Assembly: GCA_011109175.1 (NCBI GenBank)
Contig: RDEW01000029.1
Coordinates: 34,158 to 98,157, forward strand
DNA: 64,000 nucleotides
Source of the DNA: Dicyema japonicum
Lineage: Eukaryota > Animalia > Dicyemida
Reading direction: 5' to 3'
Positions 2,640 through 62,385 of this stretch are shown piece after piece (position 1 is the stretch's first letter; the number at the start of each line of letters is the position of its first letter). The notes under the pieces are model-generated. The model did no database searches, had not been told where the DNA came from, and worked only from the letters and a program-made list of their open reading frames with translations. Both the position numbers and the translations under genes were made by a program.

Positions 2640-4960
2640 TATGGATAAAAATTACTGGTGGGAGATTTGAACGCCAAGAACAGGACCTATGGATGCTATG
2701 GAAACAACAGGGACGGTCAACTACTAGCAGATTTGGTCGGGGAAATTGGAGTCGAAGTCTTAACGACCGAAGAACCTAACCACTTCTCATACTACGGGGG
2801 TGATATGCTGGGATTGGCCTTAGTATCTCCACAACTACTAGACCATGTAAACAGGCCAAGGTTACTCTGGGATATAGGGAGTGACCATATCCCTATGGAG
2901 ATGACTATAAATCTTGAACCGGATATTATTGAAGACATTTTTCTGTATTATGATACCTCGTCGGTAGACTGGGAACATTATCGTCATTATTTATCGAAGA
3001 GTATGTTAATGAAGATTAATTATTCCTTTTCTACACATAATGAGTTGGATTATTTCAATCAAGATTTATCCAATACTATTACGATGTATCTGCGATTATA
3101 TGCAAAGAAGATTTACTCAAAAATCCTTCCGAAAACGAATCAGTCCTGCCCTCCCTCTATTCGGGGTCTTATTCGCGAGAGGAATACTCTAAAGACGAAA
3201 CACAGACGATGTGTGGACATGTGGGATAGGATAACTTTGAAAAACAATATCGATGCTAACCAAAAAGTTATACAAAGAGCCTGGAAGTTGTATTCCGAAA
3301 ACCAAGTTAGGAAAGCAGCCTCGAAAGTGCACCGGAAGAATCCTTGCTTCTGGAAATTGTACTCCAGACTGACCAACAAAAATTTGAGAGCAAAGAACAT
3401 TGTACTGGCGGATCAAGATGGAAGAACAATTCCCCTGGACAGAGTACCGTCAGTATTCAGGAAACAATTAGAAAACATACAGGGAGTAGACCCAGTCAGT
3501 ATTATATCTGAAAAATTCTCAGAGGATATATCTAGCTCTATGGATTACTCCATAGACGATCTGAATAGTATGGTAGAGGAAATCACATTGGCAGAAGTCA
3601 AGACTGCTATACGGGAGTGCAAAAACAAGGCTCCTGGTTTTGATAGCATTCCGATGACTATGTTTAAAGAAGGATCCGATGAATTTCTATCTGTTCTACA
3701 AAAGATGTATAACGCAAGTTTCAAGCTCGGACATTCCCCTTCACTATGGAAGCACTCAATTGTAAAGATGATCCCTAAACCTGGAAAGTCGAGGAAAGAT
3801 CCTCTTAGTTATAGGCCTATAAGCCTTATCTGTTCTACATCGAAGATTATGGAACGGATTATTTTCAAGAAATTGAATCAATATATAGAAAAGATTAATT
3901 TTCTACAGTGTTACCAATGGGGTTTTCGGCCAGGGAGATCGTGCGGAAATTGCATTTACTCTCTAAACTATGAGATTGCAAATGCTTTTGAGAAGAGGAG
4001 CCAGTTGAGCCTTGTCTGCCTTGACATCTCTAAGGCTTTCGACAGTGTATGGCACGAGGCCTTATTCTGTCAATTGGTTCGATCAAAAATTTCAAGACAA
4101 ATGTTCCTATGGCTGAAGAACCTGTTGACTGGGAGGATATCAAACGTGGTGGTTGGTGGAAGATATTCCGAAGATATATTGTTTAAAAGAGGAGTGCCGC
4201 AGGGGTCTATTCTAAGCCCTCTATTATTCAACATATTTATGGAAGATTTTCCTTCTCCACAAAACGTTAGGACCAAGCTGATGATTTATGCGGATGACAT
4301 CTTAATCCTAGACTCATCTCTGAAGGCCTACATCTCTGAGCGACGAATCGGGGCTTTTGTCGACAGAGTTCGGACATGGTGCGATAGGAGAGGGATGAAA
4401 CTATCCACAGAAAAATCCAGTTACTTGCGAATATGCAGGCTGGGTCGACACCAGAGAGAGATGTATACGCTACGGATACCGAGAGTCTCTAGCCTGAAAT
4501 ACCTGGGGATTGCAGTGGATGGAAGAGGATCGTATCGGAAGGACATCGAGGAGCGGAGAAAGAAGGCCGTTCAAGCGATGTTCTGCTCCAGAAAACTTAT
4601 GCTGGACGCCGATACAATGCTCTATATCTTCCGAACTGTGATTCTCCCAAGACTGATATACGGATGCGAGGGATGGTATTATACTCCCTCGAGAGAAAGG
4701 ATTCTCGCTCGCCTGGAGAAAATAAGGCGAGCGGCGATAAAAATATCTCTGGGGAGGAAATTACATGAAAGCCTCTCCGAGGAAGAGAATAGCCTTGTCA
4801 GGCCGGTAAAAATAGATATCGAAGTAAGGTTGGGTAACCAGCTTCTCAATGCGTACTAAATGGACGACTACAATGGAGATGGGATACGTGTGAAGTGTCC
4901 AGGCCGCTAAGGCGGACACGATTAAAATCCCTTTAATTAACTCCCTACTTACTTTGGAAT
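2640..4960 (+). mobile_element. 5'-truncated LINE (I/Jockey-like); uninterrupted 733-aa ORF with APE C-terminal part and RT
   Basis: ORF 2658-4859 carries GDLNA and GSDHIP (endonuclease) plus YRPISL, DISKAFD, GVPQGSILSPLLFN and YADD (RT). The 3' UTR has a hairpin and an AT-rich tail. Confidence 0.93.
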
Positions 4961-25436: not shown

Positions 25437-25800
25437 GCTCCGACTGTGATCCCACGCATTTTCTATACGGACGGGGGTCTTTTTCCTTTTCTCTTCTGAA
25501 ATTGCCTCCAGTTGCCTCTATGATAGACTCGAGTGCTCTGGGGGCAATTTCTTTATCTGTATATTTTTCTAGTAACTTTTTTGCTCTTGACTGGAATTTT
25601 CTATACGGACAAGGGTCTTTTTCCTTTTCTCTTCTGAAATTGCCTCCAGTTGCCTCTATGATAGACTCGAGTGCTCTGGGGGCAATTTCTTTATCTGTAT
25701 ATTTTTCTAGTAACTTTTTTGCTCTTGACTGGATCTCTTGAATTTTTGTTAGGTTCGTTGCCGACAGGTTAGATCCCCATGCAGCACATGCATAGCCTAT
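25437..25800 (-). mobile_element. LINE C-terminal fragment, tandemly duplicated
   Basis: The reverse strand reads YACAAWGSNLSATNLTKIQEIQSRA, the post-RT region of I-clade LINEs. A ~140-nt unit is repeated. Confidence 0.65.
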
Positions 25801-30059: not shown

Positions 30060-33000
30060 AAAGGCCCTATGTTATGCTATGTTGTCTAATTAAATCGTGT
30101 CTGACCCTTGGAGATCTCATGAACGAGTTTCCTCCACTCTCCCCGATCCGTTGCAATTTGGAGTAGCCTTGATATAGGCATTCCCGTGACGTCTTCCACC
30201 GTGGATAGCCACCGAGTCCTTGGTTGGCCAGGTCTTCTCTTCCCAGTAATATTGCTGAGCATAATGGTTCTTTCCAGTGAATCAGAGCGGACAACATGCC
30301 CAAAGAACGCCAATCTGTGTTTTACGATTCTTCCTTCTACCGAAATGTCCGTCTCTACCCGTTTGAGTACATCGATGTTTGTTATTTTGGAAGTCCTCCT
30401 CCAGCACCACAGCTCAAAAGCATCAATTTCCGCCTTTTTCAGTATCAATGATTCTGCGCCGTATAGAAAAACCGGGAACACGATTGCATTAACCAGTTTG
30501 CATTTGGTCCTTAAGCAAATATCTTTGCTTTTCCAAATTCTATTCATTCTCTGGAAGGTGTCTCGTCCCATGACAATTCGCCTCTTGATTTCCAAGCCTC
30601 CGTCACCATTCCGATTAATTAGACATCCCAGAAAAACAACATTATCGCTACTCTCTATTTTCTCATTCCCAATTTTTAGTTCCATTATTAGCAGTCGTCA
30701 TAATTTTGGTCTTTTTGATATTTAGTAATAACGCCTCTTGATTTCCAAGCCTCCGTCACCATTCCGATTAATTAGACATCCCAGAAAAACAACATTATCG
30801 CTACTCTCTATTTTCTCATTCCCAATTTTTAGTTCCATTATTAGCAGTCGTCATAATTTTGGTCTTTTTGATATTTAGTAATAAACCAAAGACGGCGCTC
30901 TCTTCTCTGAATCTTAGAATCAACTCCCTGAGTCCATCCTCTGTTTCAGCCAGTAAGGTTGTATCGTCAGCATAGCGCAAATTATTGATGTTCCTGCCTT
31001 CAATTTTAATCCCTTTGATACAGTATCCAATTTAGTCATGATCATTTCGGCATAAATATTGAATAGGAGATAATAAGCATCCTTGTCTTACTCCACTCCC
31101 TGAGTCCATCCTCTGTTTCAGCCAGTAAGGTTGTATCGTCAGCATAGCGCAAATTATTGATGTTCCTGCCTTCAATTTTAATCCCTTTGATACAGTATCC
31201 AATTTAATCATGATCATTTCGGCATAAATATTGAATAGGAGATAATAAGCATCCTTGTCTTACTCCTCTACCAATTTTGAACCAATCGGTATCTCCATAC
31301 ACTGTTCTAACAGTAGCTTCTTGATTCTTATAAAGAGATTTGATAAGCAATATCAGATGGCCATCGAATCCAAATTCTTTTAAAACAGACCACAGCTTTT
31401 CATGTATAACGGAATCAAAAGCTTTCCGATAGTCAATGAAACACATGTATACATTCTTTTGGGATTCATGGGATTTCTCCATAATCCACCGGACATTTGC
31501 TATATGGTCACGTGTGCCTCGTCCCTTCCTGAATCCTGCTTGGAGATCCGGTAGAATCATTTCGGCATTTGGCATTATCTTTAGAAGTATTTTGCTGACG
31601 TGGGGAATTAAGGCTATTGTACGATAGTTCGAACAGTACTTGCTATCCCATTTTTTTGGTATTGGAATAAATATAGATCTTTTCCACTCACTTGGCCAAA
31701 TACCAGTTTCCCAAATTTTTTGACATAGACTGGTGATAGCTGTCACCGGTATAGCCTTCAACAATTCGCTTGAGATGTCGTCAATCCCTGGTGTCTTGTT
31801 CCCCGTTAATTGCCATTTAGCCCACACGCATTCCTCCTCAAGGATTTTATGCCTCTCACCCAACGTTTTTCATTAACACATATGAGTGGGCACACAGTTT
31901 TTGAATATAGCCGTTCCGTATATTCTCTCCAACGATTTCGGATGTTTTGTTGGCTTAGCAATTCTACACCATCCTTGTCCTTGATTTTGCCCATCATTTT
32001 CGTAAAGGTGGTTCGTAATCTTTTTAGTTGTTAATACGCATTCCTAGTGTGACCTCTCTTATAGTCATCTTACATTTTTTGCAGGGTAACCTCCGGTAAT
32101 CTTCTTTATTTTTCCTGGCTTCCTTTTTGAATTCAGAATTAAGTTTTCTTATCTCGTCTGTATTCCCAGAGACTTTACAACTTTACGAGCCTCAGCAATG
32201 TTTAGGGTGTTGGCAGAGAGCCACTCAGAGCACTTGGCCGGTGTTTTGTATTTATTGCAGCGTTCCTGATAACCAACTGCATATCATTCCATAATTCCGT
32301 TTAAATCCAGTAATCCAATATCCATTGCATATTCTGGTGGTATGTTTGAGACATCGAATTTCTTTACTCGGAGGGTATTCCATGTGTTACTGAATTTCGT
32401 CCTAATTTTTGCAACAAGTAGCTGATGGTCTATTCCACAGTCTGCCCCTGGATATGTTTTGACGGCTGTTATAGAGCTTTTCCAACGTTTGGCGCACAAA
32501 ATATAATCAATCTGGTTCCTAGACATTCCATTTGGCGACGTCCAAGTATATAATCGTCGTTTGTACTGTTTGAACTATGTGTTAGTTATCTGAAATTCAT
32601 TTTCCTGACAGAATTGGACCAGTCGATCCCCAGCATCATTTCTTTTCCACAAACCAAAACTTCCCACAATATCCGTATGCACCCAACCTTTGAATTGAAA
32701 TCCCCCATTATGTAGATTATGTTTTTTTTGGGTTTTAGTGCCTCTTGAAATTCATAATAAAATTGGTCAATTTCGTCATCCTTGGCAATAGATGTTGGGG
32801 CATACACTTGCATGACCGTAATATTCAATAGTCGTCCACGAACGTGGATTAGTATTATCCGATCATTAAATATTCTATGACTTTCAATAGCACGTGCAAT
32901 TTTCTTTGAAGCAATGAAGGCCACTCCATTTCTCTTTGCATTAAGGTTACCAGAATAATATATGACGAAATCATCAGAACGAAAAAACCACTGTCGATTT

Positions 33001-33200
33001 AGTGAAGTTCGCTTACTCCAAGCAGGTCAATATCAAGCCTTCTCATTTCTCTTTTTACGACTTCTAGTTTTCCTTCGTTTAAGTCTCTTACGTACCATGT
33101 TGAAAAAGACTCGAGGTTTGATGTTTTGCAGTAACGTTGCTTCCAATTAGATCGTAGGAGAGTTTGATCATAGGATTTTCTTGGCATTTAAATACAGGGT
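30060..33200 (-). mobile_element. Degenerate full-length RTE-clade (BovB/RTE-1-like) LINE
   Basis: APE: TWYVRDLN..GVSELH, QVYAPTS, MGDFNSKVG, NQIDYIL, CGIDHQLL. RT: YRTIAL, QAGFRKGRG, GVRQGCLLSP. C-terminal RRPGQPRTRW..DRGEWRKLV. Two internal ~150-nt duplications. Confidence 0.92.
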
Positions 33201-38406: not shown

Positions 38407-39145
38407 ATGACCGACAAGAGGTTTGTGATGATTAATTTATGCTCAGACAATATGGACTTTTAATACCCGATAAAAAGACAAAAAAGCTGTCAAAGAGCTG
38501 TGTATTCGATGAAGATGACGATGAAGTCAAAAAACTTACTTTAAAGTCTACCAGTGCTTCCAAATATTTCATCTCAAAAGAGGTAATATTCATATCTAAG
38601 TTAAACAGTCCCAATGTGAGATTGAGTCAGCTTTAAAGGACGACCCTGATGTCTTTGAGTACGATGCCGTGTTTGAGAAGATTAACAAGACTACTGTTTC
38701 CACTAAGGAGAAGACGAGGCCCGTCAAATATATGCACAGAATCCTGGAGGCAGCGAAGGAGCGGAAGATCGAGCAGGATCGCAGGAATGAACGTAAGGCC
38801 CAGAAGGACCTGGATAAGGATAGCTGTGAAGAGGCCTTCATAACATCGGGGTACAAACGAAGACTAGAGGAGATGAGAGTTGAAGAAGAAAGACTAAGAG
38901 TACATAAGGATAGCTGTGAAGAGGCCTTCATAACATCGGGGTACAAACGAAGACTAGAGGAGATGAGAGTTGAAGAAGAAAGACTAAGAGTACAAGATGA
39001 GGAAGACGGTGAGGGTTTGTGTGATATCCTAGCCAAATATGATATTAGAGGGACCAAGGACATATCGGCCATATATAAGCATCTCTATAGCACTGATGCG
39101 GCACAGATGAGTAGGCATAATACTAAAAGGCGGACAAATTTATGA
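38407..39145 (+). CDS. NSRP1: Nuclear speckle splicing regulatory protein 1 (CCDC55/NSRP1), 3 exons
   Basis: Spliced model MTDKR|QYGLLIP..ALKDDPDVFEYDAVF..KYMHRILEAAKERKIEQ..EEAFITSGYKRRLEE matches the DUF2040 pattern. Two 26-nt introns. Confidence 0.88.
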
Positions 39146-39500
39146 TTTATTTGTTTTTTATATATTTTGCATTTCTATTGTCGTTTTTATGTGAGAATGA
39201 GTGTTGGGAGGTGGTCATATAGTCAAGGATTTAATCTCGGTGTGAGTTTTCCCCTCACTTTTGAATTCTTATCGACTAAAAAAAGACTTTAACGGAAGGG
39301 AGATGGAACCTGATTAGACATGGACGATTTGTTTAGGTCGCTAGATTATCTCTTAAATTAGTTTTATCATGTTGATATGTCACTTTTTTGTGTCAAATGG
39401 TGGTTATCATAGTTTATTCTATCCTAAATAATAGCACTCTGTGAATATAATTTGTGTTTGTTTTATNTGATGAACTTATCCAAAACCTGAGAAATTTAAT

Positions 39501-39611
39501 TGGAGGCCATTTTGAATGGAGGCCATTTTGAATGGAGGCCGTTTTGAATGGAGGCCGTTTTGAATGGAGGCCATTTTGAATGGAGGCCATTTTGAAAGAG
39601 GCCATTTTGAA
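39501..39611 (+). repeat. Minisatellite, 7 x 16-nt unit TGGAGGCCATTTTGAA
   Basis: Read directly; two units carry A>G and the last is partial. Confidence 0.95.
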
Positions 39612-39952
39612 TGGGAACCCTTTTTTGTGTCAAATGGTGGTTATCATAGTTTATTCTATCCTAAATAATAGCACTCTGTGAATCTAATTTGTGTTTGTTT
39701 TATCCATTTTTGCTATTAATGATAGTGCATAAGAATCCGCCATGCCTCAACTCCTGCAGTAGTTTCCTATTTCTTTTTAAAGTTTCGGTCTTGACTCATG
39801 AATAAGTAGTTGTCAGACAATATTGAATGAGAAATTATCAACACAGGGTATTTCCACCTTTCCACTGGAAGAGACAGGTGTTTTGTTAAAGTCCAATAGG
39901 TTCCACATGATATCCAGAAATATCAAATCCTTTAAAATAATTTTTTTTCCAG

Positions 39953-41736: not shown

Positions 41737-42891
41737 ATGGACAATCAAAAGATTCATTGCATCAACTTTGGCCTGTGCTCAAGGTACCAAATTTAATGAT
41801 CCAGAACTCTCACTGTGGGCTTTACCGGCGGGGTTAGGGTCTTTCTGCTGGGCGGAATTGCATCTCTGGACCTGGTCTACGATTCCAGGGATGGTACCCC
41901 TGTCTATTCTGACGTCCGCTTGGCGGAGTCCGTGGACTCTACTTTGGCCCTCATTCAGTCCCATGTACCCAAACATTTGGTTCTGTACGACTTTGTGGCA
42001 AAGAAGGAAATAAACAAAATCAAATTGAACGAAGAAATCGTCTCCTTTAGTATCAATAAAGCCCACATGATAATTCGACTATCTCATTCCGTGGTCATAT
42101 TCGACCAGAAAACCCATTGTGAACTAAATGTTCAAGGAAATGCCGATCCCCACTGCCCGACCCTCTCTGTATCCTCAACTCACTCCCCCACCTTATTCGC
42201 CTACCACTGTCTCCCCCATTTTGGTTCTGTCTCCGTTTGTTCCTTCTCCAATGACCTCAAATTTGTACCTTACAGTTTTCATATCTTTAAGGAGTCTCTC
42301 AGCATCCTCAGTGTTCCTAATGTGACCGTGGATCAGGTCCAGATAGATTCTACGGGTGATCTGGTTGCTCTAACCTCGAGTGATGTATTAACATGCTAAC
42401 TCACGTGTAGGCGACCACAATTTTCGTGTTCAGAGCGTACACGGGACAAATTGTGTACCAGTTTTGCAGAGGACTGTCGAGACACGTGGCCATAACATCT
42501 CTGTTCTTTTCTGAGGACAAGTACCTCATCTGTTCTTCTGACTATGATACAGCCCATGTTTTCGAATTGATACCCCAATCGGGGTAATATTTAGTTGATT
42601 CTTAGGTCCTTAATTGGTGGATACATCTCAAAGGCTTTGTCTTATTTGCCATTCGGGACCTCGTTTATGATGCAGAGGAGTTCCATTAGAGCCAAGATCC
42701 CGACACGTGGGTATGCTACTCGGTCCTATTATTGGGAGCATGGAGGGATTTCCTGGCTAGCTGTGGCGTCCTACTGTGGGAAATTGCACGTGTTTGTGCT
42801 TGATATCCCCAATAAGCAGTGTATTCTCATCTCTGGGGACTGTAGTCTACTTAAAGTGGAAGGACATGTGAAAATATTTACAAAAAAATGA
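41737..42891 (+). CDS. WIPI2: WIPI1/2 (Atg18)-like PROPPIN beta-propeller, 4 exons
   Basis: The spliced model aligns with remembered WIPI2: ALTSSDATTIFVF..QFCRGLSRHVAITSLFFS..DTAHVFEL, ..KALSYLP.., LAVASYCGKLHVFVLD..C. Introns are 21, 26 (42385-42410) and 22 nt. Confidence 0.85.
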
Positions 42892-42959
42892 TATTTGATT
42901 ATCAAATTTTCAATAATTTATTATTTTTTACTGCCAATAGGTCAATTCGTATTCTTACC

Positions 42960-43505
42960 GACTTTTCCGTTCACTCTGTGAACTTTCAATTGCAGAGGAC
43001 TTAAACAACCTCACACGAAACACAAACTGTTATGCGACCTAGCCACAAGAAGAGGATAGAACTAAACACCAGGTTTAGAATATATAAAGCTTTTGTCATC
43101 CCGGTACTAATCTACAACTCTGGGATTTGGGGAATCTTTAAACTGGAAATGGACCGTCTTGACTCTTTCCACAAAGCTCAGTTCAAATCTGTAATCAAGA
43201 TTATGAAAACCTTGATACAAACCTTTATAATAAATACAACTACGGCGTGCTGTCAGATGATATTTCACAATGGTCAACTACTTCGCACACACAGGATCAA
43301 GAACGACACTTCCGACTATCTTGAACAAAGACCTATTGGCGGTTGGTATGAGACTAACTTAGGCGGACGATCTCGACTACCTAAGAGAACTAGCGCGCAA
43401 CAGAGGATCATGGTCGAGGTTGACGGAGAAGATGATTAGGAATATGGTACAGGGGAAACTTAACTAATTTATGTTTTCTCGGGAGTGCTTTTAATAATAA
43501 TAATA
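42960..43505 (+). mobile_element. RTE-like LINE 3' fragment
   Basis: TRFRIYKAFVIPVLIYNSGIWG..LDSFH; (TAA)n tail. Confidence 0.8.
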
Positions 43506-43509
43506 GGTC

Positions 43510-45010
43510 AAGATGATAGTGCTAGGTTGGTGGGTCTTTTAGAGAATATCTAACTCATCCTATGAATGTCCACATAATTTAGTATCTAAAAACCTTGATG
43601 ATAAAATATGATTTTGAATTAGAATTCCTCGATTAAACGATTCCGGTTCCCCCTATCGCCCTCGCCATTATCATTCTGTGTTTATCGAGTGACCCCACCC
43701 TTTCCCGGGAATTTCTGCGCCTGTGTCCACACCAAAAATGTGATCACCAAAAATGAGGATCTGTTCCTAGAAGTGACATCGTCTGGATGGGACAGAAGTA
43801 ATGTGTTCGAATCATCAATATGGTGTCATGAATTAATTAAATACGTCGGGGAAATCGGAGAGTCCTGTAAAACTCCATTTGGTAACAGTTGAGATCTCGA
43901 CCTGTTGTTATCATACTTCCCCTCGTCAGTCCTGTTTTCTGGTCAGAGTTAGAGGTTAGGGTGGATATTGGAATTAAAAAATACTTTAGTTAGGTGAGTT
44001 CTCCAAACAGGGTCCTTTCGAACATATATAAATTATGGATTACAGCCGTTTATAATAAATTGGGATAGAATTGACAAGTCTGTTATGGTAGATATATTTG
44101 GAAGCAAAGAAAGCGCAAAACGAGAATAATCAGCATAATAGCTAACTTCTCCAACACCTTCGAGAGAATTCAGGGGAATCGGACGATATAAAAGTCTTTC
44201 TTAGGTATTCTGGATTTAGAAAAAAATAACACGTGAACTCCGTATGGAGAAATTTGTTATCCAAACTTGATCGGAAGTAAAAAATACTTTATTATTAATT
44301 GATACTGATCTGAATGGCCGAATGTTTATTCAAAAACCCCAAGACTAAACCCACTAATTACTTAATCCACCATTTAGGTCATCCCAGTCTCCAATAGCGT
44401 CCGAACTCGCCTTTAATATTCCGCCAACGAACTGCTCTCCGGAAGTGCTTTCTTTTGTGTCTGCAGAGGAATTATATCGGGGTGGAATTCATTTACGTGA
44501 GTCACCCTTTCTCTGGATTGGTTTCCTATCTGCTTGGAGAAACACAGGAAACGATGGCCATTTCTTAGTGTCACCTCCTCTAAAAGGAGACGTGATGGAT
44601 GAGTTGTGTCGTTATACGTCTGAGAGAGTTTATACGTTAAATCCACGAGCGTAAATCTTAAGAAGAAACAGGCATATTTAATTGTCGACACAATAATTTG
44701 AAGATAGTGAAAGCTGCAGGTGGGAGGAGGCTTTTCTTTATGATAGCATTTAGGAAGTTCAACTTTCGAACTCATTGATTAAACTCCTGTCCGTAGTTAA
44801 CAGGGTGAACTGAGACTTGGATGAAGATACAGACAACATATTTGCAGATAACCAGTCACACACCTGGTTAAATTGTGACTGAACCACAAAGTGGAGATAA
44901 TTAGGTCCTCCGCGTAAGATAAAAACGTAGTGGAGATAAAAGGGAGTCTTGTGGACCCCATTTGGATCCGGACTCTTCCACGTCGGCCAGTTAGGAATTT
45001 TCTGATCCAT
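43510..45010 (-). mobile_element. Highly degraded LINE (APE/RT remnants)
   Basis: The reverse strand has LLPNGVLQDSPISP and PDDVT (RT-like) plus broken endonuclease-like frames. Confidence 0.55.
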
Positions 45011-45084: not shown

Positions 45085-48024
45085 TAAGGAATCTGAATGG
45101 CCATGCTATTTCCCCTAACAATAGCCAACGAGATACGTTCTCGGAACTAACCAGTATCTCGCGGATCCTTGGTCACAGCTTGAATCATGTAGCCGATCTT
45201 ACGAACCAACTCATCTGCTTGGGGGCCAAGGATTCCTGACGTTTCCACCGCGAATGGAACAAAAAGATACTCCTCCGAAATTCTCTGGTACTTCCTCCTC
45301 TTTCGTTCCTCGGAACGCTTTGAAGCATGTCCTGGGTCTGAAGCAGAAGAAACCAAATTAGACGGGGAATAAGTATCAACACACGTCGTGTCCCAGATCA
45401 GGTTTCGTCCGATGGCGAATGGAAAAGTCGTCATCCCATCAGGGCGTTTTCCATCGTTTCGGGAAAGACCAGCAGGTTCTAACAGGCAATGGTGTCCAGC
45501 AGAGGCAAGGGAATTCTTTAATGTCATGTTAAGACAGGAGTGCCTGGGGAACGACCCGCATTCATCTTGCATGACAAGGGATGATAACCAAAAGGATCGA
45601 TCCAACGTCCACAGCGGCATTTTCTTTCGACACACAATTTAAGACCAAGACGAAGCGAGGTAGCTATTCTCACAGCCTCATCATCCAACAAATTTCCAAT
45701 TTCGGCAGATGGATAAGCGTTCATCCAGGCCCCCGTCGAGTGACAACTGGCTGTTTTGAGGCAGGCAAGCCTTCTTACATCTTCCGTCTTTTCAAGGGAC
45801 TCTTTCTTCTTTTCGAAGACACAAAACAAATAGGACTTTTGCTTATCACAATTGGCCGGAGCATTCAGGTACAAATTCATCCATTCATCCCAGGCTCCCG
45901 ACGGCGTCAGCGGTACGTTTAGTCCGGAAGTAGAGTGAAGGACCGTATCCACTAAACGCCTTGACGAGCCGAACGAAGATAAATAGGCGCCCAAATCAAC
46001 GTCCGAAGGAAGAGAAAGACCCAAACGACCGCAGGCAACAGGGAGTGAAGCCTGTAACCATCCGAAATCATCAAAACGAACATTAAGAATGGACCCCATC
46101 GTTGACCGGATATCCATATCAATTAACGATAGAAGGTCTTTATCGGCGTAGCATGGGGATCCCCGTAGAATAAAAAGGAGTTTTGGGAGAAGGAGACAAT
46201 TTTTCAGCATAAAAAAGGCGACATGACGGTCCAAAAAACTCATCCTGTCGGCATACTGACGTAAATTAGTCCTCTTGCCTTCCAATAAATCCCTCACCCG
46301 GTTTACCAAAATCCCACACCCAAGGAAGTCGAGAGAATCAATATGAGTCTCCCTAACCCCTGGAATGATATCGCAGATTTTTCTATGAAAAAGGTAGAAT
46401 GAATCGGAACTCAAATTCAGATTAATTGCTTCGCACTTTTCATTGTTAAATTCCAGACCGATTTTTCCACACAAACGTCTGATAGATGCAACTTTGGAGA
46501 GAATATCATCGGGACTTTCACCGAGAATACAATCGTCCAGATACCAGACGTTTAGTGGAGTGCAACGGTCCTGGGCAATATGGTCGATAGACAAGGAAAA
46601 TAGAAGAGGACCGAGTGGGTCCCCCTGTTGAACTCCGGATCCGGATGAAATAATTCCACTGCCAAAAACAAGAGGGGATGGATCCGAATACGCGAGATAT
46701 ACAAAAGGATAAATCTGAGGAATCCTCCTCCTACATGTATCAAGGACGGTGTCCTTTCTGACTGAATTGAAGGCATTCCGGAGGTCCAATTTGAATAAAA
46801 CTCTGTCCTCAACATTCAATTCAGCTGATTGTGACGCAAATTCTCTCACTGCGTGGATCCCAGCTTCACAGCCGCCATTGATTCCGACACCAAGCTGCGA
46901 AGGACAAAATTCGGCTGAAATTTGGGAGATAACAAAACGACAATTTGCGGATAAACGTCGAAATACGTTTCCAATTGCAATGGGGCGAATACTACCATCT
47001 TTTTTTCCAAGGCCCGTTAGATTCCCCGAAAAGAGGAGATTCCGACCAAAATCGGAAACGTTTCCGGAAAGCATGCGAGCTACGAGATCCCGGGTTCGCT
47101 CCAAGAGTAGCGATCCAGGCCTGCCGATAGAATGGGACACCAAGTCTGACAGATGGCCAGGTTTGAGACCGTCAACTCCTCCACTGCTACTTTTTCGGAA
47201 AGAACGAAGAGTGTTGTAAATAACTGAAGGGAAATATCATGCATAGATTGTTCTGGACGAACAGGTTTACAAAAGTCTTCTGGTTCTGGAGGATGTTTCT
47301 TACCCAATATAAAGAGTGTCTCCTGAGTGGCTTTCACTGGGTCAGAATCCGTACAAACAGTTCGAACTGCAGCAGTAAGATCGCCCTCCATCAATTTCCT
47401 CCTGACACGAGAGCGAAGCCTCTCAGGAGCCATACTGGATTGTTTGGAATTGGACTTTGGGAAGTAATCAACTGGGGAAACAAATAATTCTTCAGCCAGG
47501 GACTCCCATGAATCCATAAAGGCACTCACGCGCTTCTTCAGGACATGGGATAGAGAGGGTTTCCGAGAAGATGGGGCAGGCTTACGCTCTAACCCCATAG
47601 CCAGGACAGGGAAAGAGAAAAGAACCATCCAATCCTTTTTCGAGCCATTGGACACAGCTTTCTCAATGCAAGAAGAAAGGGCAGAAGCAATTGAGATCCG
47701 GGAAGCCTTGGGGATCCTGACAGGGATAATCTTCCTTTGTCGCGTGTTTGATAATAAAACCAGAAAATCCTCCGGAGACATGGCTTCCAGAAGGTCTGAT
47801 ACAGATGATGATGACACAAAATGATCATGAGGTTCAATTTTAGTGAGTTCCAGACGGCACGACCACGAGGGAAGTGATCGAGCAATTTTCTTGGATAGTT
47901 TTTCACAACCTATGTGGTAGTAACCAACACATACAGAACATCGAATCCCGCACTTGCGAGAATTAGATACTCTGCACCCTTTGCATGAAGTGTCTTCGTG
48001 TAGTACATCATAAAAAACAGACAT
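45085..48024 (-). mobile_element. Near full-length CRE-clade non-LTR retrotransposon (PHD-like finger, RT, CCHC knuckle, restriction-like endonuclease)
   Basis: N-terminal CxxC..CxxC..HxxC..WxC. RT: GVDGLKPGHL, IRPIAIG, LDLRNAFN, GVQQGDPLGPLLF, WYLDD. C-terminal CRCG..HPLSC..RH and KRPDG..WDTT..KRRKY..PFAVET. Two frameshifts (about 47230 and 45565) and one TAG near the end. Confidence 0.92.
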
Positions 48025-48939
48025 GAATAGATAATAGGAGAGAGGACTGTATATATTAACGACGACAACAACGACCCTCTTAACAATTAACTTGTTAAAA
48101 ATATTAGCAATTGACAAGTGATAACTATTACAGTCCCGTGCAAATGTTACCGCCAGGGTCAAGTAATTTATAAGATAAGCAAATTTAAAAAAATTATTAA
48201 CCCGTGCATATGTTACCGCCACTTTACTCAAAATTCAAGATAAACCGAGATTTTGTTAAATTAATTGTAAAATCAATATTTAGAAATTCCTCCTTTATTG
48301 CAAATAACTTCGTCAATTCTTTTAGGCAGCACTTTTGACAAGATGCAAATTATGAATACAAGGTGGTAGAAGGATAAATCTTCCATGGTGTATGGGAATT
48401 GATTGAATAGCTAACCTCGATAACACGATTTGTGCCTGAGGCCACAGATGCTTGAGGTGAATACAGAGACACCTTTAGAGTCATAGGCAATGGTGGACGT
48501 ATCAATTTAATAGACTTGTCAACATTATGGGAGGTGAAGAAGGCATTATGAGGTTCCTGTTGTGAACCCCATTGTTTGATGTACAGATGAGAAAATTCTT
48601 GTGACTAATCGACAATATTTTATAAAATTACTTTCAAGTTTGCGAGCGGGTTCTGAAGACTAGAGGTAGTGACGGTTTCCACTCCGCTATCGTCCACATT
48701 GAAGACTGTTGATACTTTTTAGTGCTTTCAAGAAGGCGGCGCACAAATTTTATGACAAAGTCGTCCAACAAGACGGCTTCAACTGTGCTTGTGGTTAACT
48801 CGAATTAGTTGCGATTTTCTGGAATCTTTTATTAAGGAAAGACAAAAGAGTAAACGGTTGCTTCCCTGACTGCGTGGCTATTCCTTCTCAGAATAGCAAG
48901 ATTCGCTCAAATAACCAGCAACGCTCACGAGGGTTTCCT

Positions 48940-52919: not shown

Positions 52920-53505
52920 ATGGTTCTTTATGAAGATTTAGATTCATTGAATAATACACTATCCACTAGAACTTATATTTCTGGGTCGCTGTTTCATTAT
53001 ATTGCAGAGATCAGCTGTCCTCACTCGATTTTGAGGCCTTTCAGATAATGGCCTTGAACCCTCCGACTTCTCAGTACCCTCATATTCTGCGTTGGTACAA
53101 CCAGATTTCAGCACTTTCTCCCCGAACGGAGGATCGCGAAAACGACACTCAAGAATTGCCAGTATACATGAGTAAAGACTTGTTCTCACTCTAGACGGCA
53201 AAACAGAGAAATACATGGCCGTTATAGTAGTAAAATCCAGAAACCATGACTTAGACATGTCGCATGTGGACGCCTTCGTTCGTGGAATAAATAAAGTAGG
53301 ACTAGAATGGGGAGAGAGTTGTTCTTAGCTTAACCCAGGCATGATAGAAGAGGAAATCTACGGGCTACTGACCTATAAGATAGCATGTGTGGTAAACGAT
53401 GCCGTGGATATCAACGACGTAGTGTTCGAAATCATGTACAACGAAGAATTGGTAGTCTAATACTAATTCCAGGAGGCAGAGTTGTCATCATTCCAAACTT
53501 TTTAA
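52920..53505 (+). CDS. Divergent elongation factor 1-beta (eEF1B)-like protein, 5 exons
   Basis: N-terminal LNNTLSTRTYISG..PPTSQYPHILRWYNQI (eEF1B GST-like). C-terminal VRGINKVGLEWGES..YGLLTYKIACVVND..SSFQTF (GEF-domain pattern). Introns are 23, 23, 21 and about 21 nt. Confidence 0.78.
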
Positions 53506-53566
53506 ATCGATTAACCTGTTTAACGTCACATTACGTAGTAAAAAGTGTTCATTGGCTAAATTAGTG

Positions 53567-56500
53567 TTAGGCTAACACACTGCGACAGTGAAGGCATAAC
53601 TGAGAATCGGGGATAGCTGTGAACCTCCGACATCTCTGACATTTCACATTTCTTGTTCTCTCATAGGAGACAAAAATGTCTAGGAATGAGAGAATAATAA
53701 ACTATCAACACTGAAAGAGAATTGGGAGGGAGTACCCCCAGCTTGTGTTCTTGCACATCGGAGAAACTCGGTAAGGGGAGAGTAGGTGTCCCCGTCCACC
53801 ACACGTGCAAGATCCTATAATATAAAAGACTAGTCTAACAGAAAATGAAGAGTCATGGACACGCACATCCATACAAGATAGGTCAGGGACCTTCTCAGCA
53901 AGCACTCTTCTTATCTTCTGCAAAATACCGATCTTCACTAGCAAGTCATCGTCAATGGTAAAGTCAAAGGATGGCCATTCCTTTTGGAAGAATGAAAATC
54001 CTGAATATGGGAGACCTTCCCTCACGGGGTGGTGTAGATAGACCTCATCAACAAGATGAGGGGCGATTGGAGCAAGGGCAACCATAAAGAGGTTGAGACA
54101 GTGACTCAGGCATATTTGAACTGATCGGCGGTATTCAGAGTCACTTGGGAAACAGTATAGCCTTGTAAAGGACCAATCCTACCTGTGCTTTTGAAGGGGA
54201 AAGAAACTGGTGGAGGCTAGTCGACTATAGTCCTCCAGTAGTTGCAACACGAAGGAGTACTTGTGAGACTCATAAGCTGATATAATCTAAGTCAAGGACA
54301 AATATTACAGATTCATTCCAGGTTTTGATAATGTGCATAAAATGGAGGTCAAGTGGCCATAGACTGGGGACGGGGGAAGCACTGTCAAAGTCGTGGAGGC
54401 ATCCCAACATGAAACGGAGAAATTTCCTCATCTACAATAATGGACATTAAAGAACATGAAAAACACGGTTATAGCAATCTTTGAATATGTTAGACGAGCA
54501 CGTGGCATCTGATTGAAATGATGTGGATGCCACCCACCACCTTAGAGTAGTGGCACCCATCTTTTCCGTGATATCCCATGGATCAATCACGTTGCCCAAT
54601 GATTTGGACATCTTCTGCCCCTTCTGGTCCCTCGTAAATCCGTGAATCAACAGATTACTGCAATGAGGATGTTTGATACTCGTATGGAGCACGTGACTCT
54701 AGAGCGGTGCTTGTCAACAAAGAAGACTGAAACCATCCCCTTATCTGGTCTACTCCTTCAAGATATATATCGGCTTTTCCTCTAACATCTGATAGCACGT
54801 GGATCCAGGACAGTCCACTGTCCATCCAGATGTCCATGATATCGTCCCCTTTCTTCAGTTTTGAGTGGTCAATTCCAAGCCTGTGACATATTTCACTAGG
54901 AATCAGGTCATTCAGGTCTCCAGTCCACCAAATATCAGCCCCACGTGCTCTAAATAGGCCTTCTAAGTGCTCAATTATTTCACTAAACCATTAATATCAA
55001 TAAAACCTGTTAACTACGGGGTCTCCAGTTTCAATGTTGTAGAAAATTGGAATAGGCAGTCCCCAGGACCTCTGTCTAGAAATACACCACATGGGACGTT
55101 TATCCACGAGATTTCTAAACTCCTTGGCGAGATTAGGGGGTTGAATGTCCATTTTATCAATAATTTCCTTAATTACTCACAATCCTCTACCAAAGCTCGG
55201 TCCCGAACGGCGGCACAATCAAAGAACCACTGAAAACTCGGCTTTTGTATAACTGGTTGTTTACTTCTCCAATCGTATGGATACACGTGGTCATACTCTA
55301 CCACTGATATCACCATGTCCCCCAATCTATCAATAACTTACATCATCAACGTTTCTTACTCTCTTTGATGTCTACGAATACGTCCAATCCTCCCAGACCG
55401 AACACGTGTCTGAACCTACCATCGTCATCAACATAGTCGCTCTGAGTGAATATATCAAGGTACCATTTTAAGTGAGTGACTGACTCCAATAAGGAAGTCT
55501 TCGTAACCATGGGAAGGGGCACAATGGACGAGACCGGTCCCCACATCGTTAGCCACATGGGTCGATTTGATCATTGATCTATTTCCCTCAAACGGGTGCT
55601 GGTATACACATCCATCCAAACTGACTGAATTTTTGATAAATTCAAGGACCAGTCCAGTCTGTTCAACCACAGAAGGAACCAAGTCGACTGAGATGACGTA
55701 ATAAACACAATGATCTGGAGAATAGTACAGCCCATAGCTCGAATTAGACTAACATGTACTCAAAATTTGGATTATAGAGTATAGCCTCGTTACTTGGGAG
55801 AGTCCATGGAGTTGTAGTCCATATAATCACGTATATCGGTCCCATATGGCATTCGATTGGGGGATTCTTGAGTAGGCATCGCAAATAGAGGGATTGACTG
55901 CATATAAGCAAACCACAACCTCACGTGCTGGGAGTATTCTAACTCTGACTCAGCAAGGGCGGTCCTTTAGTGAACAAAACGACTACTTTGTAGAGGGCGA
56001 CCAATAAACAGGCATCATCTTTCGAAATATGATCCCCTGTTGTTATAGTAACCACAACCTTCTCGTACAGCAGCCTAAAGGCCCTGATTTGGTCTCCCTG
56101 ATAGTCAAAGTCCATAGTTCTATATGGAGTGCTCCAATCTGCCATGACCCCCCACCGTTTGAAGGCCGTCATCTGTCTTTTAATTGCCTCCTCTGCAAAA
56201 TTTCTGGCTTTAATAATAAGTCACGTGTGTTACCTTTGATTCTGATCTCTAAGTTGGAAAGGAAATGGTCAGTAAAGCAATCTTTGATCTTCCACTCAAT
56301 GGGAAGTCCGTGACAATCCCATCCGGGGATATAATGGATTCTGTGGCCCCTCAGTAGCTTATATCGGTTAGTTATGTCTTTGAGAATCTACCACGTGCTA
56401 CAACACCTACTTTATTAAGAGCATGGCCCACATGAACGTCTCCGTTGGCGTAAGGAGGTCCATCGTGAAGCACGAAGGTAGACCTGTTCCTTAACTTTGA

Positions 56501-56705
56501 CTGCCACTTGTACAAGGAGTCGAATTGACATTTCTGGAAATAATTTATTCAAAATTACTTCATGGACCTGCTCTTCTATTTTTGGTAAATCCACCTGAGA
56601 TAACGGAAAAGACGTTATCGGAAAATGCAGAGAATCCGAAAGCTTGGATGAAAAACGGAAAAAATTTGCTTTGGGAATATTTCTGATTAAAATATTAATT
56701 GACAT
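53567..56705 (-). CDS. IARS2: Mitochondrial isoleucyl-tRNA synthetase, 18 exons
   Basis: [15 protein letters not shown] (HIGH), [59 protein letters not shown], and C-terminal CQRC..CLHC zinc finger. Basic presequence-like N-terminus. 17 introns of 21-26 nt. Confidence 0.96.
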
Positions 56706-56899
56706 TTCAATAAGAATTCATGTGTTTTTAATTAATTTTAAATTAATTTTTGATAAAAAATATTTTTATAATATTACAATGAATATTAAATTTAAAATTT
56801 TTACATTCTTGTTGAATTTTTTACAAAAACATGAATTTTTACGTCAGCAAACCCTCAATATGTTCCTTCCGCAAGCCTAGAATTCTCCTCATTCTGCAC

Positions 56900-58320
56900 C
56901 ATTTATACGAATTATAGTCGTTTCTTAATGACAAAATAAAAGTAACAAATGGTCGTATAGAATGTCTACCGCGCTCCCGAAAATGTTGGATGGGCAGAGT
57001 GGATCGACACAAGTAGCCTCCCAGACCAAAGGTTTTCTTTCTTCGGATGGGAAAATTGTGATTCCGTCAGGACGTTTTCCCTCTTCTCTGTCCAGGCCAA
57101 TAGGTTCAAGTATGGCGTGGTATCCTGCAGACTTCAGGGCTCCCTTGACAATTCCTTTGATCGCCTTGTGTTTTGGGAATCGCCCTCACTTTTTTGACAC
57201 GAGAAGGCATGGTTTGTGTCCACAACAATCCACGGTGGCGCCACACCGGCATTTGTGAGTCTGGCAAATCTCCAGTCCAAGTATGGTGGCGATGCCGATG
57301 CGGAAGTATCGTCGTCAAAGTAGGTCACGACACTACCAACGTGCATTGATCCAAGCACCTCTTTATTCGCATCTTTCAGTGACTAGACAGGCACGTCTGT
57401 GTTGGTTTGATTGGTTCAGAAGTTTCTCATATTTATCCTCGCAGATGGTCCTGTAACGGTCTTAATGCTCAGGCATCATCTCCTTCAAATGCTCCATATC
57501 TGTGATTTCAGATGATTTTGTTTGGATTTGGAGAATCATCCTGATCAGCAGTTAGCTGGAGCACAAAGAGGATAGATACGCAGGGCAAGTTAGATTTTTC
57601 GGTGAAGGGATTCCCAGTCCGCCCAGGCTAACGCGTAGGGTCGCTTGGTCGTCAAATTTCACATTTGTGATACGTTCAATTTTGGTCCGGAAGAGGGAAT
57701 CGATAGCATCGAGCTGTTGCATTTTCAGGTAGCAGGGTGCCCCCCGAAGAACGTAGTTCAGTTTCTGTGCTGATAAGGCGTTTCTCAGGAGGAATAGGAA
57801 GGTAAATGCGTCCAGCATCTCCCGACGTCTGAATGTTGTTTTTAGTTGATGTTCTTTTGTTCTTAGAGTGTTACTGATTCCAGCATCAGTAAGAGGGCAT
57901 CCAAGTATTTCCAGTTGTTCTGATTTGGTTTCTGTGACTTTCGGAATGATCTCTTTGAACATACCAAGGATCAGATTCCATTCAGACTGCGAAAATCCAA
58001 AATTGGTAACTTCACACTTATTGGTGTTTAGAGTTAGGCATAGGGATTCCAGTTGTACTATCAGACTTTTCAAACAATCTAGTACATATTTCAGATGACC
58101 ACCCATGGAGCAATCATCCAAATACCATACTCTCAGAGGAGTAGAACAATATCCTGTGATACGGGCAATTCCCAGGCTAAAATGGGCAGGCCCCAGTGGG
58201 TCTCCTTGTTGGACTCCAGAAGATGAAATGTAATATTGGCCGTGTACCAGACTGGATGGTTATCCATCGAGCTATGAATATAGCTGTACACTGATGGGTA
58301 GTATATGGAGCAATCCTCCA
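56900..58320 (-). mobile_element. Degenerate CRE-like element (RT C-terminal part and endonuclease)
   Basis: ..LGCPL..LLRNAL..LNYVLRGAPCY..LGGLGIP and KRPDG..WEATCVD-like frames, broken. Confidence 0.8.
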
Positions 58321-58324
58321 AATT

Positions 58325-58920
58325 GTGTCGGTCACGTCTATGTTTACTTCGGACAAAAGGTTGGGGAAGATGACTGTCAAGTTAAAATTGGACATTGAAA
58401 TCCCCTTCACCAAATATCAAAAGATCCTGGGCGTGACACTGGATACACACTTATGTTTGTCACCACACGTGGCAAACATTGTTCTGAAGTGCGAGAAGAG
58501 AATCAATGTATTAGAATGTTTATCTGGAATATGGAAGACAGGTACCCACCCGGTCTTGATGAACATTTACAAGCAATACATCGAACCATGCTTATCGTAC
58601 GCGTGTGCTTCGTGGGGACCTTCATTATCATGGACGAACACGAAATCGAGGACGTTCAAAAGAAGGCTTTCAGAATGACGGAGCGGTGGTCTTGTGGGAG
58701 ACACAGAACTGGACCGACTACTCTGGAGGCCCTCATTAAACAAAACTCCGGCATGCATGACAGTGACCCTGCAAATACAGTTAGCCACCCTGTACTACTT
58801 GTGTGGGTACGAGGGAGGAGCACCAGGAAAGAATGAGGATTTTGGCGGAACGCATCGGGATCACGTGATAGTTAGTTTTGGTTTTACCGTGGTCTTGGGT
58901 GTTAAATAAATAAAATAAAT
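58325..58920 (+). mobile_element. I-clade LINE 3' fragment
   Basis: KILGVTLDTHL..YIEPCLSYACASWG; 3' UTR shared with 22930-23020. Confidence 0.8.
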
Positions 58921-59004
58921 CAGAAACAACAAAGAAACGAATTATACGGTGAATGATCTGAACGAAACTTGAAGAGGTTGACAGAGTAACAGGGACTCAA
59001 GTTA

Positions 59005-62000
59005 TTATTATTATTAATAGCACTTTCGAAGAACCAAAAATGTAATTTATTTAATTATGGTTCCGCTTGTGCCGTATTTTTCTTCAGGTTATTTTTTTTC
59101 CACAATTATCTTGACCAACTTTCTCCATGCTCTGCGGTTACAGGCAGTTATTCCGAGCGTATCCAGATCATCTCCAGTTTTCAGTTTTCGTCTTATATTG
59201 GTCAGGTCCTTGTGTAGAACCTCTGGCAAAGTTATGCGAAGTCTTCCACGGAACGAGAGCAGAAATAGTTATCCATTGCTATTTTAGCAAACGTCATCTG
59301 GTTCATTTGAAGGATGTGACAAAACAGACAACATCTTGATTCCAGGATATCCAGACTCAATGGTCTTGTATTACATACTTTGTATAGATTCTTGTTTGTA
59401 ATTTTTTTTCGGCCAGTTGATGCCAAGCAACAGTCGAGTTGAGTTTTTTTTTCGGCCAGTTGATGCCAAGCAACAGTCGGAGTTGCTTACGATGGAAGGC
59501 ATCTAGTTTGTCCATTACCGCTTCTGAGACACCCCAGGTTGCAGCGTTGTACATTAGGACTGGTTTCACGAAGGCATTGTATAGTCTCACACGTAATTGT
59601 GTGCTAATTTGTTTACGATGATTCCAGACTACTCCCATTTTTCTAAAATCCGCGATGGCCAACATCTTCCTGTTAGTGATATCCTCAGCGTCTCCGAGCA
59701 ACGACCCCAATTTTTTACAGTATTTCCATTTTTCATCAGTTCGGGTTAGTTCACGGCGCATGATAGTTGTCTCCGTCTTTTCCGTATTGATTTTGATGAA
59801 CCATTTTTCTAGGACATCTGGCATCCGTATATAGTTTAATGTTTTCTCGTCGCTGGATATATAGTCGATATCTGCATAAATCACTTCAGTTTGAGGTAGA
59901 ACGCCAATTAATAGTCTGAAGTCTCTGAGTGCCGCCTCCAGATATGTCACAAAAAGTACCGGTGACAAGGAATCTCCCTGCGGTACCCCGAACATTGTCT
60001 CGAATGAGACAGACTCCAAATTTCCAAAACGTACACTTAGATGCGTTGTTCCAAGTAATAGACGGATCATTCTGACACTGTCCTCGTCAACCAACTTCTC
60101 CAAGATATCCAAAAGTCTCCCTCTGTGTATAAAGTCAAAGGCTTTGGACATGTCCATGCCAAGGATGCCAATAGCCCCTTTGTACTTTTGATGTGTTGCA
60201 CAAAGCTATCGATGTCCCCAGACCACATCAGCTGTAGATCTCCCTGACATGAATCCGCTTTGACCGTGAGAGAGAAAGTTATCGATGTCAGATCCAATCC
60301 TGTTCAGCACTATAAGTGATAGTGTCTTGCGTAGAGTCGTCAATAGTACGATGGGTCTTAAATTCGTTAAGGGGTCTTTAGCTTTGCCCGGCTTTTGTAG
60401 TGCAATTAGTGTGCCATTACCCACATCCAGTGGTGAGTTGTATTTGAATGTTTTGTTGTATATCTCAGTTAATAGTTCAGAGATCTCGGTCGGTGCATAT
60501 TTGAGAAGTTCTGCATTTATGTCGTCAGGGCCAGCAGCTCTATTGTTGTTCAGTTTGTCCAGGGCTTTTTTTGTTTCCAGAATCGTTATCGGAATATTTA
60601 GTTCTCGTGCTTCAACATCGAATTGTTTGATTTTTCCCCGTGGTTTTGAATGAAGGCCTGCTGATAATGGCTGGATATGGCCGATGGAATTTCATTTTTG
60701 TTTAACATAGTCTTTCCAAACTGGTCATGTATTATGATTTTTGATGACTGCGTGTCTCTATGTAATAGGTGAACAGCCTTGAACATCTGCGCTCCGTTTT
60801 TGAGTCTTTCTACTTCTTTAGCCATTCCAGCAAGTTTATTTTCCTTTATTTCCCTCGTTCTTTTCTTTATTTTATACAGGGTTTGGTTCCGCATGACTCT
60901 TTGAGTGTGTTCCTTTGCCTGGTCCTGACAGGTTTCGACCTGTAAACGTAGGTTCCTCTGCAATTTGGATAGTTCTTCAAGCTCTTAGTCATANTATTTA
61001 GTTCTCGTGCTTCACCATCGAATTGTTTGATTTTTTCCCCGTGGTTATGATTGAAGGCCTGCTGATAATGGCTGGATATGGCCGATAGAATTTCATTTTT
61101 GTTTAACATAGTCTTTCCAAACTAATCATGTATTGTGATTTTTGATGACTGCGTTTCTCTATGTAGTAGGTGAACAGCCTTGAACATCTGCGCTCCGTTT
61201 TTGAGTCTTTGTACTTCTTTAGCCATTCCAACAAATTTATTATCCTTTATTTCCATCGTTCTTTTCTTTATTTTATACAGGGTTTGGTTCCGCATGACTC
61301 TTATAGTGTGTTCCTTTGCCTGGTCCTGACAGGTTTCGACTTGTAAACGTAGGTTCCTCTGCAATTTGGATAGTTCTTCAAGCTCGTGGTCATAGTGCCC
61401 GTTGAAATGCTTCGGTTTTACTCCAACTGCTGAATGGGCCGCGCACTTTATTGCATCGATGGTGTCTTGCCACAGCTTCCCAGGCATTTTTTCTTTATTC
61501 CACTGTCTGATCTTTTCTCTCAATGTATTTTGATAGCTTTCCCGAGTCGGTCCCACCATGCAGAGTTGCTCTACTGCGAACCTCCCCTCAGATATCCTCA
61601 TGCCAGCCGCTTTGGAAACCCCAAAATATCGTTTGAAAAGGAAACGTGCCACAACCAATCTGTGATCATTATCTACTAGTGTCCCACTGTAGCCCTGAGA
61701 ATCTGTTAGCAGTGCCTTGTAGGCTTGTTTGCAGATAATGTAATCTATTTGGTTATATATAGGCTTGATAGTCCCAGATTTGTCCTTTCGGTAGCAGCTC
61801 CATGTCGTCTTATGTCTTGCTGAGTGCCTGAAAGCAGTGTTGCATAGAAATAGTTTGAATGTATTGCAAAATTCGATAAGCGATTCTCCTGAATGGTTCC
61901 TGATCCCCCTTCCATGGCTTCCCATGAATTCTTCGTTACTACTCCCACGTCCTGCCTTTGCGTTCCAATCCCTGGCGATGTATGTCATGAACGATGTTTC

Positions 62001-62385
62001 CAAAGATGCATATAGTTGCGACAGGGAGGAATAGAAGTCGTCTAGTTCGTCTCCATTGATTAATACTCTCACCTTAGTTGGTGCATATACATTAATAATG
62101 AAGATTATGGAATTGTTCCTTTCACCGTATTTTAATTGTAAAACACATATTCTATCACCCTCCACGTCTTGTGGATTCGATTGTTGAGTTCTTTTTGTAT
62201 TGCAAATCCCATGCCGTAGTGTGGGCAATTCGAAGGGTGCAGAATCAGGCGGAAATCATTGTTGATTTCATCTAGTCCGCCTTTTACTTTCGTTTCCTGT
62301 AACCACGGTTACCTTGTACGATCCAAGCATAAATTTCTTCTTTTAGTATCCGACTTTAATCCTCTTACATTGAACGAGCTAATAG
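59005..62385 (-). mobile_element. RTE-like LINE, near full length, with a ~390-bp duplication at an N join (60994)
   Basis: APE: FNVRGL, INVYAPT, DWNAK, NQIDYI, DNDHRLV (ORF 61122-62228). RT: LRPIVLL, DMSKAFD, GVPQGDSLSPVLF, YAD. (TAA)n tail. Confidence 0.92.

Follow-up and report, generated by a model that had tools for sequence, protein, structure and literature searches.

Hyper-abundant short palindromes are a cyanobacterial phenomenon whose cause has been disputed for 30 years. HIP1 (GCGATCGC; HIP, highly iterated palindrome) and the alternate cyanobacterial HIPs are at least 10-fold more frequent than composition predicts, in all frames and outside genes too, and the cause of HIP1 is debated between biased repair (PMC4390886) and selection, the latter on the basis of conservation analysis (PMC5861425). 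All the literature that we found on "highly iterated palindrome" was cyanobacterial, and no paper was found that linked CACGTG with Dicyema or dicyemids or described such a palindrome in a eukaryote; DNA-level palindrome pressure of this kind looks to have been described so far only in bacteria. Here we describe an excess of CACGTG in a stretch of 64,000 nucleotides (nt) of Dicyema japonicum contig RDEW01000029.1 (positions 34,158 to 98,157; hereafter the window), which culminates in ten copies within an IARS2-like gene for isoleucyl-tRNA synthetase (IleRS). We tentatively interpret these ten copies as a local maximum of a HIP1-like pressure acting on DNA, and favour drive, that is, biased repair or gene conversion, as its cause, with a probability of about 0.45.

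The comparison with HIPs rests on several features. The excess amounts to 26-fold over the IleRS gene body and to 12-fold over host genes, and no other hexamer of the window is as over-represented. Its occurrence is independent of reading frame: exonic IleRS copies fall in codon phases 0, 1 and 2 in four, three and one cases, two further copies are intronic, and spacers also carry the motif. As with HIP1, the copies are scattered and are not copies of a repeat element, and biased repair and selection compete as explanations. Unlike HIP1, CACGTG was found in an animal nuclear genome, is a 6-mer and not an 8-mer, has CpG instead of GATC at its centre, has no known cognate methyltransferase, and shows its contrast between host genes and retrotransposons of the long interspersed nuclear element (LINE) type.

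A sequence-specific repair bias that turns near-cognate into cognate sites as a neutral by-product is known from Escherichia coli, where Dcm/Vsr very-short-patch repair raises CCWGG. CACGTG is also the canonical E-box core of basic helix-loop-helix leucine zipper (bHLH-ZIP) proteins, such as Myc/Max, USF and MiT/TFE. Known bHLH-ZIP modules, including the MiT/TFE CLEAR elements, share this core, but they belong to promoters or enhancers, prefer certain flanking bases and act on regulons, whereas the sites described here are mostly exonic, lack such a preference, fill codon opportunities to saturation and extend beyond one gene. In addition, E-box-bound USF forms a heterochromatin barrier at the HS4 insulator of chicken, and germline genes of Caenorhabditis elegans are licensed by PATC sequences (periodic An/Tn clusters). 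These are likewise signatures in or near native genes as opposed to silenced transposons or foreign DNA. However, PATCs are intronic, AT-rich and periodic.

The IleRS gene body accounts for 4.9% of the window length but for 10 of its 29 copies (binomial P = 7e-7). Dinucleotide shuffling of the gene body gave 0.38 ± 0.61 copies (maximum 3 in 2000 shuffles). The coding sequence contains eight copies, compared with 1.68 ± 1.13 (maximum 6) after synonymous-codon shuffling, in which eight or more were reached in 0 of 5000 shuffles, and with 0.75 expected after codon permutation. Introns contain the other two copies against 0.024 expected (P = 2.7e-4), with the motif present in 2 of 17 introns. The exonic copies encode His-Val in phase 0, ARG, SRA and ARV in phase 1, and ATC in phase 2; the pressure ignores both reading frame and exon/intron boundary. 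Eleven peptide positions in IleRS could encode CACGTG synonymously, and 8 of these are filled; two of the three unfilled positions are encoded by CATGTG. Chance, codon usage or dipeptide composition of the IleRS protein as the source of this count has a negligible probability. The protein does have six His-Val pairs where 2.3 are expected from its composition, and synonymous shuffling alone yields 1.7 copies, but this explanation is rejected by the synonymous shuffles, the intron count and the share of the window. A first-pass annotation of this DNA had listed the ten copies, and we recovered all of them at exactly the positions it gave (10/10). It had also counted by hand 18 ACGT tetramers in the gene, 10 of them with both C and G flanks, which proved exact, and its placement of copies in all three codon phases and in two introns of 23 and 26 nt agrees with our gene model. 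The codon-shuffled and dinucleotide-preserving nulls that it proposed, run here on IARS2, leave the count unexplained.

The gene is predicted to encode a type-1 (bacterial/mitochondrial) IleRS. The deduced protein is colinear from end to end with bacterial/mitochondrial-type IleRS, contains the HVGH and KMSKS signatures and the C-terminal Cys cluster, and has an N-terminal extension; the closest solved structures are 8c9e and 1ffy, both of bacterial-type IleRS. Homologues were fetched with one exon as query and converted to a profile, and a spliced alignment of this profile to the DNA was made in which GT..AG introns could be 17-45 nt long. A minimal-intron model contained frame errors and was dropped in favour of the profile-guided one. 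All 17 introns are GT..AG and 21-26 nt long; these calls rest on homology and the GT..AG boundaries, as the runs X1-X4, contigs from another DNA sample of the same organism that are colinear with the region, are DNA contigs without splice joints. The coding sequence differs from that of the other sample at 14 synonymous and 7 non-synonymous positions, indicating that IleRS is a live gene. No protein of a congener or of the animal itself that would allow a conservation test was found, the best matches having only 52-67% identity, and exact-protein look-ups with one LINE reading frame and with IleRS exon 1 returned no record for either. An extremely high-copy repeat family begins about 235 nt upstream of the IleRS ATG and overlaps LINE reverse-transcriptase fragments. 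Contig word depth is 1,000-600,000 in this repeat and approximately 20-340 in IleRS, thousands of short variant contigs map to the repeat, and two CACGTG copies (58466 and 58862) lie inside it.

Dinucleotide-preserving shuffles of the whole window gave 6.2 ± 2.7 copies (maximum 14) against the 29 observed. A first-order Markov model ranks CACGTG first among the window's hexamers for over-representation (4.8-fold); the counts of other ACGT-core and CANNTG palindromes are unremarkable. The sites occur in unique contexts, with no extended consensus. Pfam scans identified P-type ATPase, SDR, POU, NSRP1, PROPPIN and IleRS genes as host genes of the window; the frames of genes other than IARS2 were approximated by stop-free segments, and their counts are small. 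The host genes (10.8 kb) contained 16 copies, where 1.34 were expected, compared with none in two intact LINEs (4.9 kb; 0.43 expected), 5 in decayed LINEs (12.2 kb; 1.6 expected, approximately 3-fold) and 8 in the remaining DNA (35.6 kb, AT-rich spacers included; 2.8 expected, approximately 3-fold). The pressure acts strongly on host genes and weakly on decayed LINEs and other DNA, and it is not seen in intact (young) LINEs. The CACGTG excess is not private to IARS2, and the lone outlier that the first-pass annotation had named as fatal to its idea is not what we found, as other host genes, decayed LINEs and the remaining DNA share the excess. Its observation that the SDR, NSRP1, POU and eEF1B-like genes have no copies was confirmed for the first three; the eEF1B-like gene was not located. 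SDR and NSRP1 offer no motif-compatible peptide position and POU one, so their zero counts say little. Non-LTR (long terminal repeat) retrotransposons dominate the window, two with long intact endonuclease/reverse-transcriptase frames and four decayed; integrase and hAT remnants are also present (Table 1). For the genome as a whole, a repeat content of 49% was reported (PMC6736024). Introns shorter than 30 nt, GC near 37-39% and an abundance of LINEs agree with an origin in D. japonicum, an octopus parasite (PMC6736024, PMC13644364). LINE insertion at CACGTG sites was considered, and no association was visible at element ends.

The contrast between host genes and LINEs is also seen when opportunity is taken into account. 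Besides IleRS, compatible peptides were filled in 3 of 9 cases in PROPPIN and 1 of 9 in the ATPase, giving 12/30 for host genes, compared with 3/36 in LINE frames. The ratio of the motif to hexamers one synonymous step away was 8:2 in IleRS, 4:1 in other host genes and 12:3 in all host genes, compared with 3:12 in LINE frames (Fisher P = 0.0028, host genes vs LINEs) and with 1.6:4.1 expected from shuffled IleRS. The pressure has turned almost every hexamer within synonymous reach into CACGTG. Gene-specific targeting, which the difference between IleRS (8/11) and the ATPase (1/9; P = 0.01) might indicate, is weakened by the absence of any remaining synonymous one-off in the ATPase, whose low count is therefore explained by few compatible peptides. 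The peak in IARS2 probably reflects a fast-evolving, divergent protein that offers 11 compatible peptides, of which almost all are filled, and not membership of a special regulon.

The visible exit from the motif is CpG transition to CATGTG or CACATG. The three synonymous one-offs that host genes still contain all read CATGTG, which is the product of this transition. The second DNA sample differs from the reference at approximately 1% of positions in 53000-57062, mostly by transitions. At 56148, 56155 and 56225, X1 keeps the reference base and X2-X4 do not, which implies polymorphism within the pooled sample. Among the listed differences, 56225 G>A (CACGTG/CACATG) is the only one that falls within an IARS2 motif; 9 of the 10 sites are identical between samples within the species, a comparison that has no statistical power. 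Repeat paralogues hold one-off variants where one copy carries CACGTG. With CACGTG masked, the observed/expected ratio of CpG was 0.58-0.60 in IleRS and the P-type ATPase vs 0.8-0.95 in LINEs; thus, a CpG-centred motif is enriched in DNA that is otherwise losing CpG, and these ratios hint at gene-body CpG decay, possibly by methylation.

The peptides at six of the eight exonic sites occur in only 0-3 of 47 homologues. We considered that CACGTG overwrites conserved residues and rejected this: the total of 11 compatible peptides in this IleRS is within the range of homologues (6.5 ± 3.5), and unconverted non-synonymous one-offs are not located at more conserved columns. Amino-acid rewriting by the motif is not demonstrated in IleRS. 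Individual sites and other features are listed in Table 1.

Table 1. The IleRS gene, its CACGTG sites and other features of the window (position 1 is the first base of the window).
Feature	Position	Strand	Description
Mitochondrial/bacterial-type IleRS gene (IARS2-like)	53567..56705	-	Profile-to-genome alignment, 20 full-length homologues; ATG at 56705, TAA at 53567; 18 exons, 915 amino acids (aa)
CACGTG, intronic	56392..56397	.	In 23-nt intron 56388-56410 (gene model)
CACGTG, intronic	56222..56227	.	In 26-nt intron 56208-56233; polymorphic, CACATG in X2-X4 (56225 G>A)
CACGTG, phase 0	55922..55927	.	His221-Val222, 2 nt 5' of splice donor; HV in 11/47 homologues
CACGTG, phase 0	55403..55408	.	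His372-Val373, variable region; compatible peptide in 0/47 homologues
CACGTG, phase 0	55284..55289	.	His404-Val405; His invariant among homologues, Val in place of S/R/K
CACGTG, phase 1	54942..54947	.	Ala-Arg-Gly 502-504; compatible peptide in 2/47 homologues
CACGTG, phase 0	54796..54801	.	His551-Val552; compatible peptide in 3/47 homologues
CACGTG, phase 1	54690..54695	.	Ser-Arg-Ala 586-588; compatible peptide in 0/47 homologues
CACGTG, phase 2	54499..54504	.	Ala-Thr-Cys 642-644; compatible peptide in 0/47 homologues
CACGTG, phase 1	53802..53807	.	Ala-Arg-Val 844-846; compatible peptide in 0/47 homologues
Unfilled His-Val of HVGH signature	56429..56434	-	CATGTG, one CpG transition from CACGTG
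Unfilled conserved His-Val	55554..55559	-	aa 329-330, CATGTG; HV in 30/47 homologues
PROPPIN (WIPI/Atg18-like) gene	41738-43889		Four CACGTG in 390 nt (42402..42792), three in coding frames; 42402 in probable 26-nt intron 42385-42410, immediately ahead of the intron's 3' TAG
Intact LINE frame	2649..4856	+	Endonuclease + reverse transcriptase; no CACGTG, 0/4 opportunities filled
Intact LINE reading frames	45527..48234	-	No CACGTG, 0/7 opportunities filled
Extremely high-copy repeat	56940-58900
Retrotransposon and other remnants	14968-17051, 19918-22439, 30089-33026, 57555-62255, 605-883, 5566-5856		Integrase and hAT remnants among them
N gaps	11855, 25040-25436, 39467, 60994
Regions of gap-flanking duplicates	11183-12527, 24843-25992, 39383-39703, 60595-61394		95-99% identical direct duplicates
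Tandem duplications	30579-30884, 23267-23536, 25458-25733, 19369-19628, 38814-38994, others		Near-perfect, 90-180 nt

The first-pass annotation had proposed that E-box enhancers moved into exons as introns and spacers shrank. A gene-specific form of this explanation, in which IARS2 and a few co-regulated genes belong to, for example, an MiT/TFE mitochondrial-autophagy regulon, can draw on the canonical bHLH-ZIP core, on spacers and introns that are tiny indeed, and on the fact that the two richest genes of the window encode a mitochondrial aminoacyl-tRNA synthetase and an autophagy-type PROPPIN. We nevertheless consider it quite improbable. No CACGTG is present in the approximately 235 nt between the IleRS ATG (56705) and the upstream repeat (56940), and no factor-specific flank such as TCACGTGA or CCACGTGG was found, the symmetrised -1 base over the 29 sites being C17, T14, A14 and G13. 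Synonymous opportunities are filled to saturation instead of at a handful of sites, the ATPase is likewise saturated at the one-step synonymous level, and micro-introns, decayed LINEs and remaining DNA also carry the motif. The other suggestion of that annotation, a mark for a chromatin, methylation or DNA-retention process, is a better, though tentative, fit than exonic enhancers. Even less likely is a signal at the RNA level, in which the self-complementary CACGUG, present in transcripts of either strand, would serve micro-intron/exon definition or RNA-RNA pairing. Thirteen of the 14 IleRS and PROPPIN sites are in transcribed DNA, three of them in micro-introns, and three exonic sites are within 10 nt of a splice site. 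However, most exonic sites lie 33-116 nt from the nearest splice site, 15 of 17 IleRS introns have no copy, and decayed LINEs and AT-rich spacers are enriched too.

A closer competitor of drive is selection, which would keep dense gene-body CACGTG as sites for a Max/USF-like bHLH-ZIP dimer, so that native genes stay active or retained amid LINE-rich DNA while transposons lack the mark, by analogy with a barrier element or a licensing signal. This explanation is possible but doubtful. It would account for the contrast between host genes and LINE frames in both one-off ratio and occupancy, it suits a gene that begins so close to an extremely high-copy repeat, and the HS4 barrier and PATC licensing are precedents. 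D. japonicum was also reported to have kept 14 HLH genes (PMC6736024, supplementary table S5), and cyanobacterial HIP1 sites are apparently selected (PMC5861425). On the other hand, decayed LINEs and remaining DNA are approximately 3-fold enriched as well, flanks show no preference, polymorphism affects one site in ten, and the decayed CATGTG state is found at two conserved His-Val pairs; the reader protein is putative. Per-site selection on thousands of marks should also be weak in a small-population parasite. The fuller proposal, that CACGTG is an animal "self-DNA" mark recognized by a Max/USF-like bHLH-ZIP reader, brought near saturation by selection in genes and kept out of retrotransposons as a functionally read eukaryotic counterpart of HIP1, appears unlikely. 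We rate drive somewhat above a selected host-gene mark, because dead LINEs and other DNA are enriched as well and because selection on single sites should be weak in a parasite with small populations and a repeat-laden genome. Under drive, a dimeric protein, perhaps a Max/USF-like bHLH-ZIP protein or a modification or repair enzyme, would read the 6-bp palindrome on double-stranded DNA and bias repair or gene conversion such that motif-creating changes become fixed more often than motif-destroying ones. Motif density would then rise with residence time, capped by protein constraint and CpG decay; dead LINE fragments and other DNA, with their approximately 3-fold excess, fit such a time-dependent accumulation without function. 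Several observations weigh against drive. Third-position GC is alike in IleRS, the ATPase and PROPPIN (0.46-0.48), and general GC-biased gene conversion is rejected, since this value is equal in motif-rich and motif-poor genes. CATGTG and CACATG, which correspond to the T:G-derived neighbour whose depletion the Dcm/Vsr system predicts, are undepleted and form the main leftover state, which speaks against Vsr-type T:G-specific repair. One-mismatch neighbours in host genes number 25 vs 32.5 expected, mildly low with no clear depletion, and nine non-synonymous one-offs in IleRS are unconverted, including some at variable columns. The reader protein, a modification and a repair bias are all putative, the genome-wide claim is based on one 64-kb window, and selection, which is favoured for cyanobacterial HIP1 (PMC5861425), could hold here too.

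An animal genome with a HIP signature would provide a second, independent system in which drive and selection can be compared, with host genes vs LINEs, micro-introns and CpG decay as internal controls. If the reader protein exists, the motif would be a novel means by which an extremely compact genome rich in transposons distinguishes its own genes from invaders. If biased repair or gene conversion is the cause, it would be a motif-specific drive powerful enough to alter codon choice throughout an animal genome.

Each N gap of the window is flanked by direct duplicates (Table 1), which are probably uncollapsed overlaps or haplotypes from the scaffolder. One duplicate pair differs within a motif, with CACGTG at 24957 and CACGAG in the other copy. 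The window also contains many near-perfect tandem duplications, which may be either a real feature or an assembly artefact, and a 91-nt tandem duplication is present inside the NSRP1 reading frame.

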